Shown here piece by piece: positions 15,399 to 53,314 of a DNA stretch of 64,000 bases. The position numbers were made by a program, and so were the translations under genes. The stretch spans positions 15,748,001 through 15,812,000 of the forward strand of contig NC_043006.1 in the NCBI RefSeq assembly GCF_006345805.1, read 5' to 3'. Source of the stretch: Octopus sinensis. Its lineage: Eukaryota. The notes under the pieces were generated by a model. The model had not been told where the DNA came from. It was given only the letters and a program-made list of their open reading frames with translations, and did no database searches. The stretch's first letter is position 1, and every line of letters begins with the position of its first letter.

Positions 15399-15945
15399 AA
15401 ATGCCCTGATGCAGTACCAGACAGTGGTTCTCATGGCTTCTGATCTTAACTGATTGGAAGTGTTATCATGTACGTTGTTTTGACTTGGTATAAAAGATGG
15501 GCTACAGCAAATATTCTGCTCAATACCACAGATTTGCTTGTCAGTTGTTTGACCTAGACCAGTTGAACATGTCCCGCAGTGGCTGACGATATGTGCATCT
15601 CTGAAGTAGTGGAGAAGCATCATAGCCATGTGTTGAGAGGGATTCTTTGGGGTTTGAATAATTTACCTCTGGAAACATGGGTGGTTCGTTCAACATCCTT
15701 AAACAACCCTTATTCATGGACCTTTTTAGCGGGAAGGGTTACTCGACCAGAAGAAAATTCTAACTAGGCCCCACCTGCAAGGTCATGTGCTGTTTATCTT
15801 GATATGAGATCACCATGTCGCGCACATATGGCTGTAATGCATGTGCCTAGTGTACCCTTATCAGACTAGTAGTCATGATGGGTATACTGGGCTTCGTATA
15901 TTTTACCCCAGTGTCACTTTGATGGCATGCACTGCTCTCTCACTC
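15399..15945 (+). mobile_element. ~550-bp non-coding element E, flanked by (AAT)n on both sides
   Basis: Copies at 51175-51728 and 52822-53314; same 3' end CTCTC(A)CTC|AAT; orientation inferred from flanks. Confidence 0.8.
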
Positions 15946-16176
15946 AATAATAATAATAATGATAATGATAATAATAATAATAATAATAATAATAATAATA
16001 ATAATAATAATAATAATAATAATGTGCAATGAATATTCTAGAATACACGTGACCGGTTTGTGCATATTATATGTAATATCAATATTTTACGACACCACAT
16101 GCACATGTATCCATTTTTGAGTGCATGCATGCACTTATATGTACATACATACAAGCATACATATATATTGTGTGTA

Positions 16177-17058
16177 TAAATTTGAGCTGATGCATTTTGG
16201 AAGAAATTCCTCACTAAAACAACCATACTCTCTTCCTTCAGGGGAACCGCTCACAGCCTGTAACAATATCAGAGACCTGGGTGTAATTGTTGATGACGAT
16301 CTCAGTTGGAGTGCACACATCAACAAGAAGGTCGATACAGCTCGTAGGATGAGTTCCTGGATCTTAAGAACTTTCCGGTCCAGAGAACAAGGTGTCATCA
16401 TACCACTGTTTTCATCCTTTGTACGGCCACACCTTGAATACTGCTGCCCACTGTGGTCTCCTCACACAAGACAAAACATCTCCAGAGTTGAGTCACCCCA
16501 GAGGGCTCTCACTAAACAAATTGAAGGCATGGCTGCTCTCGATTATTGGGATCGCCTTAAAGCCTTGAAACTTTACTCCCTCCAGCGTCGCCGTGAGCGG
16601 TACATCATTTGTACGATGTGGAAAATATACCGCCAACTTTGCCCAAACGACCTAAACATTAGCTTCAAGGTTCATCCGAGACTTGGACCACGGCTATACG
16701 TCCCCTGCCAAATTCAAGATCACAACATACATGTACACTGCAACATAATTTCTTTTCCTCAACAGGCCCTGCCCTATTTAACATTGTCCCGAGGGAGATC
16801 AAAGAGGAAAAGGATCCCATCAACTTCAAACAGAGTCTGGATAGATTCCTTCAAAGAATACCAGATAAGCCACCCATAATTGGATACAACTCACCCAACA
16901 AGAACTCACTACTTGAACAAAACTGGATACAACTCACCCAACAAGAACTCACTACTTGAACAAAACTTGACTTAAACAGGATTCGAATAATCCTATCAGG
17001 TGGTGCTATTAAGTTAGACATGGCCTGGACCAATCTCTGGTCGAAACATATCTAAGTT
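16177..17058 (+). mobile_element. 5'-truncated CR1-clade LINE (RT C-terminus and 3' UTR)
   Basis: RDLGVIVD, VRPHLEYCCPLWSPH, LYSLQRRRER motifs; frameshift near 16690; 43-bp tandem duplication at 16881-16966. Confidence 0.9.
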
Positions 17059-17102
17059 TTATATATAAATATGAATTTCCTACTTACAGAAGCACTACTT
17101 AT

Positions 17103-17340
17103 TATAAGGACGACGATTCACTTGTTAAAAACAAAAGCAATTATCTACCACCTGAAGGTTGGAATAAAACACTCCAAGACTTTTCTAACCACATTCTGAA
17201 TTTCTCTTATAATATCTTTCACAAACATAGAATTAACTCAAACCTCACCTCTAGTGGATGGAAAAACCTAACTGAATTGCAAAATATTCAATGATTTGTC
17301 CATTAAAGAATCCGACATAAGAAGTGGTATAGTACTGATC
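17103..17340 (+). mobile_element. Penelope-like element fragment (pre-RT region)
   Basis: KSNYLPPEGWNKTLQDF and NLT..W..L..L / DLSIKESDIRSGIVL resemble the PLE motifs FTPP and IKxADKGxxVV. Confidence 0.5.
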
Positions 17341-18422
17341 CTCGTCATGTTGTATGATTTGTTGTTGGGGTTGTGGAAGACAGGGTGTAGGGTGCTACAA
17401 GTGTTACTATCGTTGTAGTTATGTTATTGTTATTGTTGTTTATATCGTCTCTCTCTCTCCCTCTCTTGTTCTTCATCCTTTCTGTTTTTCTCTCCCACCC
17501 TTCCCTATTCTTCTCCTCTCCCATTCACCGTTCCCTCTCTCTCACTCCTCCTCAACTCCCCCGTCGCTGACACGTGATGAGAGGGCAGCCATCAATCCAA
17601 CTATTACCTTCACAAAGACTAAACCGGCATATCCTGTCTCTTCATAAGCCCGTCTCCTTAAGCGTTCAGAATAATTCTTCCATCGTCTTAGCTTAACAAC
17701 CCTCATCGTTTGTTTTTACGGTTTTGTTCTTCTTCTTAGATCTTTTACTGTTTTTACTTCTTTTATTGCTTTTACTGTTTTGTTCTTACTGTCCTATGCT
17801 GGTTACCCCTTTAACCCTCCGCAGAAAATTTCATTTAATTTGCTTGCGGGAAGGACTGTTTCAACGAAGTCGCGTCTTGTCCCTACCTTCGAAACGCAGA
17901 GTATATGAAACAGGGACAACTGAAGAAGGGGAATATTCTATATATTGTATGTCTCGTTTCTCTGCTTGTTTGTTTTTTTTTCGCTGTCCGAAAAAAAGTT
18001 CGTTTCTATTTTTTTGGCTTTTATGTTTTCGTTTCTCATTGTGTTTAACGTTTTTTTGATGTCCTGTACCCATATATGCATGTATATATATACATATATA
18101 TGTATGTATATACGCATATATTTATATATTATATATTATATATATATGAATTTCCGTATGTGTGCGTATATACGTGGTTGGTGTATTTTTATGATTTAAT
18201 GTGTGACGTGTTTCACATAACACACAAAGTAGTATAGCTTTTGTACACTGCCAATATACCTTAGTATGGTGTAAAGTGTTACTTACAATTTTGTGTATGA
18301 ACATACATGCGCACACGCAAGCACTCCCGCACACACACACACGCATGCATACACCCACTCACACACACATATATGCCTCATATGAAGCAATCACGATATG
18401 GCAGGGAGCGTTCATATATATA

Positions 18423-18819
18423 TCTTTATATATAAAAGTGAGGTTGTGTGCTGTCTGTCTCCTACGATTTAGATTCCTAACTACTCCCACATTTTGCGGT
18501 GCAGTTTAACCAAAATCGGGTATCTTATAGTCGTGATTCATATCGAGCCCTTCTGGGTATTAGCGCGCGTCTACGATGAGTCTACGATTTTTAAAAAAAA
18601 TTACCATCAATTTTTCCCATTTTTAATGCATTTTTGGCATATATAAGGGAAGTAACTCTCTAAAAATTTATTATTAAATCTCAGAACGTAAAAAGCTACA
18701 GTAACACCCTCCCCTTTGTGGTTAGCCATATCGAGATGGCTATTATACTTTACATCTCTAAAAATGCTTATATAGTTATTTCCCTTACAAACCCGAGCAA
18801 CGCCGGGCGATACTGCTAG
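18423..18819 (+). mobile_element. Non-autonomous Helitron (397 bp)
   Basis: A|TC 5' end; CCCGAGCAACGCCGGG hairpin 8 nt before CTAG|T 3' end; copies at 49397-49790 and 63144-63534. Confidence 0.88.
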
Positions 18820-51120: not shown

Positions 51121-51174
51121 AATAATAATAATAATAATTATAATAATAATAATAATAATAATGATAATAATAAT

Positions 51175-51728
51175 AAATGCCCAGATGCAGTACCAGGCAG
51201 TGGCTCTCGTGGCTTCTGATCTTAACTGATTGGAAGTGTTATCATGTACATTGTTTTGTCTTGGTATAAAAGATGGGCTACAGCAAATATTCTGCTCAAT
51301 ACCACAGATTTGCTTGTCAAGTTGTTTGACCTTAACCAGTTGAGCATGTCCTTTAGTGGCTGACGATATGTGCATCTCTGATCACGAGCAGAAGTAGTGG
51401 GGGAGCATCATAGCCATGTGTTGAGAGGGATTCTTTGGGGTTGAATAGTTCACCTCTGGAACATGGGTCGTTCTTTCAACATCCTTAAACAACCCTTATT
51501 CAGGGACCGTTTGAGCAGGATGGGTTACTCGACCTGAAGAAAATTCTAACTGGGCCCCACCTGCAAGGTCATGTGCTGTTATCTTGATATAAGATCACCA
51601 TGTCGCGCACATATGGTTGTGATGCTGTGCCTGGTGTACCTTTATCAGACGGGTAGTCATGATGGGTATATTGGGCTTCGTATATTTTACCCCAGTGTCA
51701 CTTTGATGGCATGAACTGCTCTCTCCTC
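51175..51728 (+). mobile_element. Element E copy 2, (AAT)n-flanked
   Basis: Colinear with 15399-15945; same 5' start AAATGCCC.GATGCAGTACCAG. Confidence 0.85.
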
Positions 51729-51870
51729 AATATAAAATATAATAATAACAATAATAATAATAATAATAATAATAATAACAATAATAATAATAACACACAA
51801 CAACACACCAACAACAACAACAACAACCTAATAATAATAATAATAATAATAATAATAATAATAATAACAA

Positions 51871-52810
51871 CGAACAAAAACCTCTGCTTTGCAAATATGT
51901 GGCCCGTAGCAAATAAGCTGATGTAGAACAGAAGTACACCCAACAGTGGCTACGGAGCTCAGGGCTAAAGGCAGTAAGTGAAGGCTTTATTATGGCTGCT
52001 CAAGATCAGAGCTTATTGACCCGGAGCTATCAAGCCAATGTGATGAAAAATGGTGTAGACCCAAAGTGCCGATACTGCATCGATGGGATTGAAACAGTGA
52101 ACCACCTAATCTCTGGATGTAAGGTTTTAACACCTGCAAAGTACAAATCAAGGCATGACAGAGTTGGCCGATATCTGCAATGGATAAGGTGTCGGCATTC
52201 TAAAATCAAAACTGTTGACAAATGGTACAAGCACTACCCTGAGGCTGTAACTAAGTGAGAAAATTTAACTATTCTCTGGGACTTCCCAAAATGTACAGAC
52301 TGGACCATCAAAGCAAGTAAACCAGATATTGTTGTGAAAAAGCAAAATGGTAAAGTTTATTTATTGATTGACATGAGCATACCTTGTGACCATAATATCT
52401 CAGCAAAAGAATTTGATAAGCACAGAAAATACAAAGATTTGCTAAACGAAATCGAAAAGATGTGGAATCCCAAGACTGTCATAATACCAGTAATTGTAGG
52501 AGTACTTGGAATAATCAAAACAAGAACTGAAAATTATTTAAGAATGATCCCTGACTTACTATCCATGCAGGAAGTCTTAACTGTTACGTCACACGTATAT
52601 TGAGAAGAGCAGTGTCACTGAATTTTCTTTCCTTCTTCCCCACTTTGTGTTACTTCTTTACCTTTTTTATCGTTTATTTTGTCTTTTTTCTCTCTGTCTT
52701 CCCTTTTTTCTCTATCACATTACTTTCTAAATGAACAATCAGGTATGTTTATTTTAATGGCCTACTTAATGGACACTCAGCAATAAATGGAAAGAGAAGG
52801 ATGCTAATGA
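51871..52810 (+). mobile_element. 5'-truncated R4/Dong-like RLE retrotransposon (divergent family)
   Basis: AAQDQ, CRYC..GIETVNHLISGC, RHDRVG, PDIVV...IDMSIP...K..KYKDL restriction-like endonuclease motifs. Confidence 0.88.
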
Positions 52811-52821
52811 AAATAATAACG

Positions 52822-53314
52822 ACAGTAGTGTAAGGCAGTGGCTCCCATGGCTTTTAGTCTTAATTGATTGGAAGTGTTATCATGTACGTTGTTTTTTGTC
52901 TTGGTATAAAAGATGGGCTACAGCAAATATCCTGCTCAATACCACAGATTTGCTTGTCGGTTGAGCATGTCTCGTTGTGGCTGACGGTATGTGCATCTCT
53001 GATCACGAGCCATGTGTTGAGAGGTATTATTTGGAGTTTGGATAACTCGCCTTTGGAAACATCGGTGTTTCGTTCAACATCCTTAAAGAACCCTTATTCA
53101 GGGACCTTTTAAGTGGGATGAGCTACTCGACCTGAGGAAAATTCTAACTGGGCCCTCACCTGCTGTTTACCTTGTTATGAGATCATGTTTCACACATATG
53201 GTAGTGATGCATGCACCTGGTGTACCCTTATCAGACGGGTAGGCATGATGGGTATATTGGGCTTCGTATTTTTTACCCATTGTCACTTTGTTGCCATGCA
53301 CTGCTCTCTCACTC
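52822..53314 (+). mobile_element. Element E copy 3 (more diverged)
   Basis: Colinear with the other copies, with deletions; ends CTCTCACTC|AAT. Confidence 0.85.

Follow-up and report, generated by a model that had tools for sequence, protein, structure and literature searches.

Long interspersed nuclear elements (LINEs) with a restriction-like endonuclease, among them R2 and R4/Dong, are regarded as stringent, in that they copy only RNAs carrying their own 3' untranslated region (UTR). Dong elements insert in TAA repeats, in a snail among other hosts (PMC3812793), and Dong-R4 elements are the most abundant recently active LINEs of Octopus vulgaris, with 1129 insertions of approximately 4.2 kb mean length (PMC13282606); a full-length Dong consensus has also been published for O. 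bimaculoides (PMC9115989). Short passengers of this enzyme class have been described in Drosophila as the short internally deleted elements (SIDEs) of R2, which join the parent 5' ribozyme to the parent 3' UTR and are rare (PMC3414825), and the short interspersed nuclear elements (SINEs) of octopus, OK, OR1 and OR2, are tRNA-derived (PMC4758252, PMC4824008). The element considered here, termed E, resides in (AAT)n arrays of a 64,000-nucleotide stretch of O. sinensis DNA (RefSeq assembly GCF_006345805.1, contig NC_043006.1, positions 15,748,001 to 15,812,000 of the forward strand; hereafter the window), and its closest precedent is the R2 SIDE.

E is a discrete, high-copy, non-coding and non-autonomous family of non-long-terminal-repeat retroposons of Octopus, approximately 550 bp in length and inferred to move through an RNA intermediate, and it is very probably specific to AAT repeats. 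With E copy 1 as BLASTN query, exactly three copies, all on the plus strand, were recovered from the window (copy 2 at 51175-51725 with 91% identity and copy 3 at 52833-53314 with 80% identity to copy 1; Table 1), the alignment of the three having a mean column identity of 90%. Six further E-related pieces occur in approximately 90 kb of O. sinensis and O. bimaculoides DNA. Locus L001 of O. sinensis, reached by means of a C-terminal peptide of the LINE fragment at 51869-52600 that matched an O. sinensis protein, holds a copy with 97-99% identity to E2 and to the E consensus, and L005 and L006, which represent approximately 70 kb of O. bimaculoides chromosome and were reached through cluster members of protein P0089, hold five pieces: one full-length copy (L005 17898-17344, minus strand), three 5'-truncated copies and one old internal fragment. 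All counts and statistics on E refer to the 154.6 kb of Octopus DNA formed by the window, L001, L005 and L006. The nine pieces in this sample have pairwise identities of 76-98% and therefore represent a dispersed, abundant family in at least two Octopus lineages, with densities that are upper estimates because the loci were chosen via E or Dong. No further copies came from JGI metagenome contigs, scanned for two exact patterns, or from GTDB genome contigs scanned likewise, and the only match of a six-frame pseudo-protein of E among 5.8 billion proteins was one gene model of O. bimaculoides in which an exon is antisense E. Literature searches yielded no paper printing the E sequence and none that describes a short octopus element specific to AAT repeats. 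Existing repeat libraries of octopus probably contain the family already, as an unclassified entry.

The boundaries of E are precise. E1, E2 and the full-length O. bimaculoides copy begin at the identical first base (...AAT/AAATGCCC, the slash here and below marking a junction), which for the two window copies bears out the exact common start reported in the first-pass annotation, and no copy reaching 5' of this base was found among the nine pieces. E3 has diverged over its first ~25 nt and starts at approximately 52820, directly 3' of a AAATAATAA spacer that adjoins the 3' end of a LINE fragment (GATGCTAATGA, last base 52810). All eight copies that retain a 3' end share CTCTC(A)CTC/AAT, the three in the window reading CTCTCTC(A)CTC followed by AAT repeats, and 5' truncation is seen in half of these eight (starts at E positions 65, ~340, 409 and ~515). 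A unique-sequence target duplication was sought in the eight copies and none was found, the longest common words (5 nt or less) being at chance level; no open reading frame (ORF) is kept between copies, stops being present in all six frames; and direct reading of the termini revealed no terminal inverted repeats. The candidacy of E as a Helitron or a miniature inverted-repeat transposable element was rejected, as terminal inverted repeats and TC...CTRR ends are lacking and the 5' truncations indicate reverse transcription. At one 5' junction of a truncated copy (L001 10931-11031), E positions 65-99 (ATCATGTACATTGTTTTGT...) are partially duplicated five times in a nested fashion; the duplicated region corresponds to a predicted hairpin, and the arrangement resembles the outcome of template switching, or of repeated stalls with re-priming, in reverse transcription.

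Table 1. Element E, AAT arrays and neighbouring retroposons in the window (positions are those of the window).
Feature	Positions	Strand	Remarks
(AAT)12 array directly 5' of E1	15363-15398	+	Unique sequence before array
E copy 1 (E1)	15399-15945	+	Full length, 547 bp; first letters AAATGCCCTGATGCAG, last letters CTCTCTCACTC
(AAT)n array directly 3' of E1	15946-16023	+	Unique sequence after array; no unique-sequence target duplication
Older tRNA-derived SINE, 220 bp	50901-51120	-	Head borders the AAT array containing E2
(AAT)n array 5' of E2	51120-51174	+	
E copy 2 (E2)	51175-51728	+	Full length, 554 bp; first base as E1; 98% identity to an O. sinensis copy
Degenerate AAT/AAC array, E2 to next insertion	51729-51867	+	
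5'-truncated LINE fragment, DongB	51868-52810	+	CCHC motif, restriction-like endonuclease ORF remnant, 3' UTR ending GATGCTAATGA
E copy 3 (E3)	52820-53314	+	Oldest, 80-87% identity to other copies; near full length; variant first ~25 nt
(AAT)n array 3' of E3	53315-53360	+	
5'-truncated LINE fragment, DongA	53361-53864	+	Ends ACTACTG
(AAT)27 array between two DongA copies	53865-53948	+	
Full-length DongA LINE, 4136 bp	53949-58084	+	Candidate autonomous partner of E
(AAT)n array 3' of full-length DongA	58085-58251	+	

The association of E with AAT repeats departs strongly from random placement. Runs of (AAT/ATT) with at least three units make up 0.9% of the sampled DNA, yet an array of this minimum length lies downstream of all eight copies with a 3' end and upstream of five, the binomial probability of at least five upstream arrays in eight under random placement being 3e-9. 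At four copies the upstream arrays are long (36, 54 and 84 bp, and a complex array of more than 150 bp in L001), and E1 lies within an AAT array that has unique DNA at both of its outer edges. The copies in L001, L005 and L006 repeat what was seen in the window, lying in or at AAT arrays rather than between random flanks, and the fixed orientation of E within (AAT)n, a niche held in common with Dong-like LINEs, stands as the first-pass annotation had described it. Among the 25 AAT arrays of at least five units, the 3' end of E is found at the 5' edge of eight, the end of the LINE family DongA at two and a tRNA-like unit at four (both described below).

The arrays are older than the insertions. 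In L001, identical odd repeat variants (GATAGTAATGATAATA) stand on both sides of E, and in L001, L005 and L006 the array downstream of E passes straight into the 3' body of a reversed, diverged SINE, whose subfamily itself ends in ...GAAAGG(ATT)n; these older SINE tails and the matched variants around E in L001 place the AAT arrays before the insertion of E. A composite unit made up of E, AAT and SINE was ruled out, since divergence among the three SINEs that lie downstream of E far exceeds that among the E copies. A constant 3' end, 5' truncations, the absence of target duplication and AAT flanks together constitute the signature of target-primed reverse transcription into (AAT)n. The tRNA-derived SINE of approximately 220 bp is itself abundant (window 50901-51120, minus strand, and 19933-20364, a tandem dimer; L001 11785-12001; L005 9500-9717; L006 5188-5400); its tails are, on the other strand, AAT arrays into which E has inserted antisense to the SINE, and a large part of the AAT microsatellite load may derive from them.

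Two R2-like LINE families with a C-terminal restriction-like endonuclease, here labelled DongA and DongB ('Dong-like'), are seen in the sample and occupy the same arrays. Over approximately 7 kb (51120-58251), E2, DongB, E3 and two DongA copies follow one another in one orientation, and these five insertions sit in one ancestral AAT array. The two Dong-like 3' ends (53858-53864 and 58078-58084) read ACTACTG/AAT, with the strand and AAT register of E, as described in the first-pass annotation. AAT arrays flank the full-length DongA on both sides and also flank Dong fragments, related LINEs in L002 (a metagenome contig of the European Nucleotide Archive, ENA) and in the non-octopus loci L003 and L004 likewise end at AAT arrays, and the only LINE 3' ends that adjoin AAT arrays in the sample are Dong-like.

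The full-length DongA carries a single ORF of approximately 1000 codons (54963-57984), with a few stops and one frameshift, in which reverse transcriptase (RT), CCHC motif and C-terminal restriction-like endonuclease follow in this order and the motifs C..C..H..C, RHD and RPDIV are readable. Pfam places RVT_1 at residues 280-542 and zf-RVT at residues 734-808, and residues 214-955 align to R2 proteins of solved structure from RT through endonuclease (expect value 4e-34). A search with this ORF revealed relatives widespread in arthropods and cnidarians, at ~48% identity or less, and no relative from Octopus among the matches. DongA is best described as putatively Dong/R4-type, in view of its domain order, its (TAA)n target and a length (4136 bp) that agrees with the ~4.2 kb of Dong-R4 insertions in O. 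vulgaris. An in-frame (GAA)n microsatellite in the full-length DongA (57057-57148) encodes a poly-Glu/Lys tract between the RT and the zinc-knuckle/endonuclease region. The ENA contig L002 (sample ERZ22666216), presumably octopus DNA in an environmental sample, is 2 kb long, has 80% identity to the DongB fragment of the window and ends in (AAT)18, its other end being a reversed DongA-like 3' end.

At the RNA level, the predicted fold of E is slightly more stable than that of shuffled sequence (z = -2.2), and a hairpin of approximately 20 bp is predicted 45-95 nt from the 3' end in all seven copies that cover it (z -2.0 to -2.8). Rfam returned no family for the whole window at gathering score and, for the E copies at expect values up to 10, no match to tRNA, 5S, 7SL, small nuclear RNA (snRNA), hepatitis delta virus (HDV)-like or hammerhead RNA; ARAGORN found no tRNA in the window, and E gave no significant alignment with local tRNA-like units or with a tRNA-Lys sequence. 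A tRNA head was accordingly rejected on all three counts, as was a hammerhead ribozyme or retrozyme for want of an Rfam match, and the lack of a tRNA head, terminal inverted repeats and an ORF claimed at first reading is upheld by ARAGORN, Rfam, six-frame stops and the reading of the termini. Membership in the CORE-SINEs was likewise rejected, as the score of E against a possibly imperfect MIR consensus lay within the range of shuffles (28 and 212 of 300 scored at least as high). T4-T6 runs at conserved internal positions (~80 and ~505) argue against efficient full-length transcription of E by RNA polymerase (Pol) III; transcription by Pol II or by read-through is more likely. An O. vulgaris transcript begins with the last ~60 nt of E, which is passenger transcription only. 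In O. bimaculoides, the first ~40 residues of the Sushi/CUB-domain protein P0089 (UniRef A0A0L8FVA6) are the antisense of a full-length intragenic E (L005 17344-17898); this gene model is older, the newer RefSeq model is 13 residues shorter, and the antisense-E start is either exonisation or an annotation artefact.

E and the Dong-like LINEs have in common their target, their orientation, a 3' register of the form X/AAT, the absence of target duplications and, in full-length copies, a 5' junction AAT/AAA.... Given these features, a mechanism is favoured, with somewhat better than even confidence, in which target-primed reverse transcription of an E transcript ending in AAU repeats would start at a nick in the ATT strand of an (AAT)n microsatellite, a polarity from which it would follow that all E copies end ...CTCTC(A)CTC/AAT in one orientation. 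RT and endonuclease would be supplied in trans by Dong/R4-type LINEs of the same arrays. The AAT tail being all that E shares with the two LINE families seen here, it is proposed that recognition proceeds via this tail, with (AAU)n pairing to the nicked target and a possible contribution from the conserved 20-bp hairpin. DongA and DongB are the only autonomous candidates seen. The central proposal of the first-pass annotation, with Dong-like LINEs as helpers of E, is reasonable; the case for it is circumstantial, consisting of common target, common orientation, lack of target duplication and co-occurrence. At 51868-53314, the 5'-truncated DongB and the near full-length E3, with its aberrant first ~25 nt, are joined by only AAATAATAA; this could reflect a template jump from E RNA to DongB RNA within one reverse-transcription event, which if true would tie both RNAs to one enzyme, and could equally be coincidence.

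Several observations weigh against this mechanism. Three of the eight copies, each 5'-truncated, lack a clean upstream AAT array, such that upstream target deletion or array-edge insertion has to be supposed; upstream target loss at aberrant 5' joins would fit. Comparison of E with DongA and DongB, UTRs included, yielded no similarity beyond chance words of 9-11 nt, in agreement with the first-pass annotation, which saw no obvious common 3' tail, and E is consequently neither an internally deleted derivative nor the UTR of either family. Changes in the 3' hairpin are compatible on one side only and therefore furnish no proof of covariation, and since folding of the Dong 3' UTRs does not surpass that of shuffled sequence, a 3' structure common to E and Dong, for which the first reading had proposed a comparison, cannot be claimed. 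R2, moreover, is a stringent element needing its own 3' UTR, and tail-only use of a foreign RNA would be unusual. Another octopus LINE with a microsatellite tail, RTE-2_OV, has also been described, its 3' UTR being mostly microsatellite with the repeat unit not given (PMC9115989). Lastly, all loci in the sample were reached via E or Dong, which makes it small and non-random.

These points leave room for other drivers of E. It is possible, albeit unlikely, that E is the stringent partner of a third, unsampled Dong/R4 family, from whose UTRs the 3' 100-150 nt with the hairpin, and perhaps the 5' end, would have been taken in a SIDE-like or tail-sharing manner. Such a relationship would have a precedent in the R2 SIDEs (PMC3414825), five recently active Dong-R4 families have been reported in O. 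vulgaris against the two seen here (PMC13282606), weaker Dong-like fragments are present at L006 14626-15604 and L001 18040-18630, and the predicted 3' hairpin, stable and conserved as modelled, could be a protein-binding site; nonetheless, no element longer than E with any E sequence appears in the 154.6 kb despite nine occurrences of E, and E lacks similarity to either sampled family. More doubtful is an origin through some other (AAT)n-tailed LINE, for example one of RTE type with an apurinic/apyrimidinic (AP)-type endonuclease, in which case the array would be mainly the tail of E itself, pairing with AT-rich or AAT-like nicks. Tails of AT-rich repeats are a known property of RTE elements, as is the seeding of families associated with microsatellites; three of the eight E copies have no clean upstream array, and in these genomes a tRNA-like unit is AAT-tailed with no AAT upstream. 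In addition, the octopus LINE described as RTE has the mostly-microsatellite 3' UTR mentioned above (PMC9115989). Against this stand the absence of unique-sequence target-site duplications, which AP-endonuclease LINEs usually make, from all eight copies, the long upstream arrays at four copies, the matching variant repeats on both sides in L001, and the restriction of AAT-adjoining LINE 3' ends in the sample to Dong-like elements. RTE-2_OV, from octopus brain, has a C-terminal endonuclease and an N-terminal zinc finger, a layout that is unusual for RTE and resembles that of restriction-like-endonuclease LINEs (PMC9115989).

Two further explanations concern the nature of E rather than its enzyme. 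That a self-processing RNA is involved, with an HDV-like or other small ribozyme setting the 5' end, would accord with the precise 5' end common to three copies and with the use of such a ribozyme by R2 (PMC3774820, PMC3414825), but is very improbable: no ribozyme family is among the Rfam matches, a strict nested double-pseudoknot HDV-like descriptor gave 0 matches in E or DongA, and a relaxed descriptor gave 6-13 matches against 6.5-8.6 in shuffles. The HDV-like self-cleavage envisaged for the 5' end at first reading found no support, and of the suggestion of a 'SINE-like or ribozyme-like RNA' only the former half survives, loosely, in view of the missing Pol III-type head and the internal T runs. 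Both in the window (E3) and in O. sinensis, E comes directly after the 3' region of a DongB element, and many E copies are 5'-truncated, which might instead suggest that a longer autonomous element has E as its 3' end (UTR), the 550-bp copies being 5'-truncated LINE copies. This explanation is largely refuted already and retains hardly any credibility, given that the DongB UTR ends at GATGCTAATGA in the window and in L001, that a 250-bp array lies between this end and E in L001, and that three copies from two species share an identical first base with none longer. E as the DongB 3' UTR was rejected on the same grounds, and descent of E from DongA or DongB by internal deletion for the lack of any common sequence, so that the alternative named in the first-pass annotation, namely that E is the UTR of a longer element, does not apply to either LINE family present.

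Set beside the described systems, E shares with the R2 SIDEs a short, non-coding, non-autonomous build and variable 5' junctions, and the dependence of SIDEs on a site-specific restriction-like-endonuclease LINE, whose target they enter by target-primed reverse transcription and in the orientation of that LINE, is what is proposed for E (Eickbush & Eickbush 2012, PMC3414825). The two differ in that SIDEs target ribosomal DNA and E a microsatellite, and in that E has no ribozyme found and is abundant (nine pieces in ~155 kb); E is not a SIDE of DongA or DongB because its ends differ from theirs. With the Dong/R4 LINEs (Dong of Bombyx, DongAg, and DongBg of the snail Biomphalaria), E has in common the (TAA)n, or (AAT)n, target, the orientation, the register of the 3' junction, the lack of target-site duplication and frequent 5' truncation, whereas those elements are autonomous, approximately 4 kb long and equipped with RT and restriction-like endonuclease and E is a 550-bp sequence with no ORF. 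Classical SINEs, including OK, OR1 and OR2 (Ohshima & Okada 1994), are likewise short, dispersed, non-coding, LINE-dependent and of high copy number with a 3' repeat tail; E departs from them in lacking a tRNA, 5S, 7SL or snRNA head and a LINE-derived 3' body with respect to DongA and DongB, in its internal T4-T6 runs and in its strict microsatellite targeting. Judged from its sequence, E falls outside the strict definition of a SINE, and 'SINE-like' may be applied to it loosely. By analogy, the proposed mechanism would resemble the 'relaxed' trans-mobilisation of Alu by L1, in which parasite and LINE share a simple 3' tail only, although the tail would be (AAU)n in place of poly(A) and the enzyme that of a site-specific restriction-like-endonuclease LINE in place of an AP-endonuclease LINE.

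Other retroposon-like features occur nearby. A tRNA-like unit of approximately 75 nt, ending in ...GTTCGATTCCAGGCAGTGACCTG followed by (AAT)n, is found at 47340-47390 (plus strand) and 28046-28120 (minus strand) of the window, at L001 ~19577-19650 (minus strand) and at L006 ~11940-12000 (minus strand). One copy is 5'-truncated, none has AAT upstream, and AACATCG... follows the array in three of the four; ARAGORN does not call the unit a tRNA, and it may be an AAT-tailed retroposon or a composite SINE with an internal microsatellite. Approximately 100 nt upstream of the unit at 28120, a degenerate ORF on the minus strand (~28190-28480) displays a GIY-YIG endonuclease signature (..VYSI..C..LYKGETCRP...R.EKH..), of the type that Penelope-like elements carry C-terminally, and is followed by a WEIRKLKEAAHM tail.

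Restriction-like-endonuclease LINEs are now being engineered for site-specific gene insertion. It is tentatively suggested, with more doubt than confidence, that E is the first described microsatellite-specific parasite of such a LINE, recognised solely via its (AAU)n tail, and that a Dong/R4 enzyme behaves in a 'relaxed', L1/Alu-like manner on a foreign RNA that is not a Pol III product, enabling E to reach 10^4 to 10^5 copies and to outnumber its LINE. Were this true, an abundant natural RNA with only a target-matching tail in common with its helper would show the minimal needs of trans-mobilisation, and E would constitute a natural template design for testing. For octopus genomes, E accounts for a sizeable share of AAT microsatellites (one third of the arrays of at least five units in the 154.6-kb sample), its insertion explains nested pile-ups such as that at 51.1-58.3 kb of the window, and it flags a source of gene-model artefacts, as in the one O. 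bimaculoides protein model with an antisense-E start.

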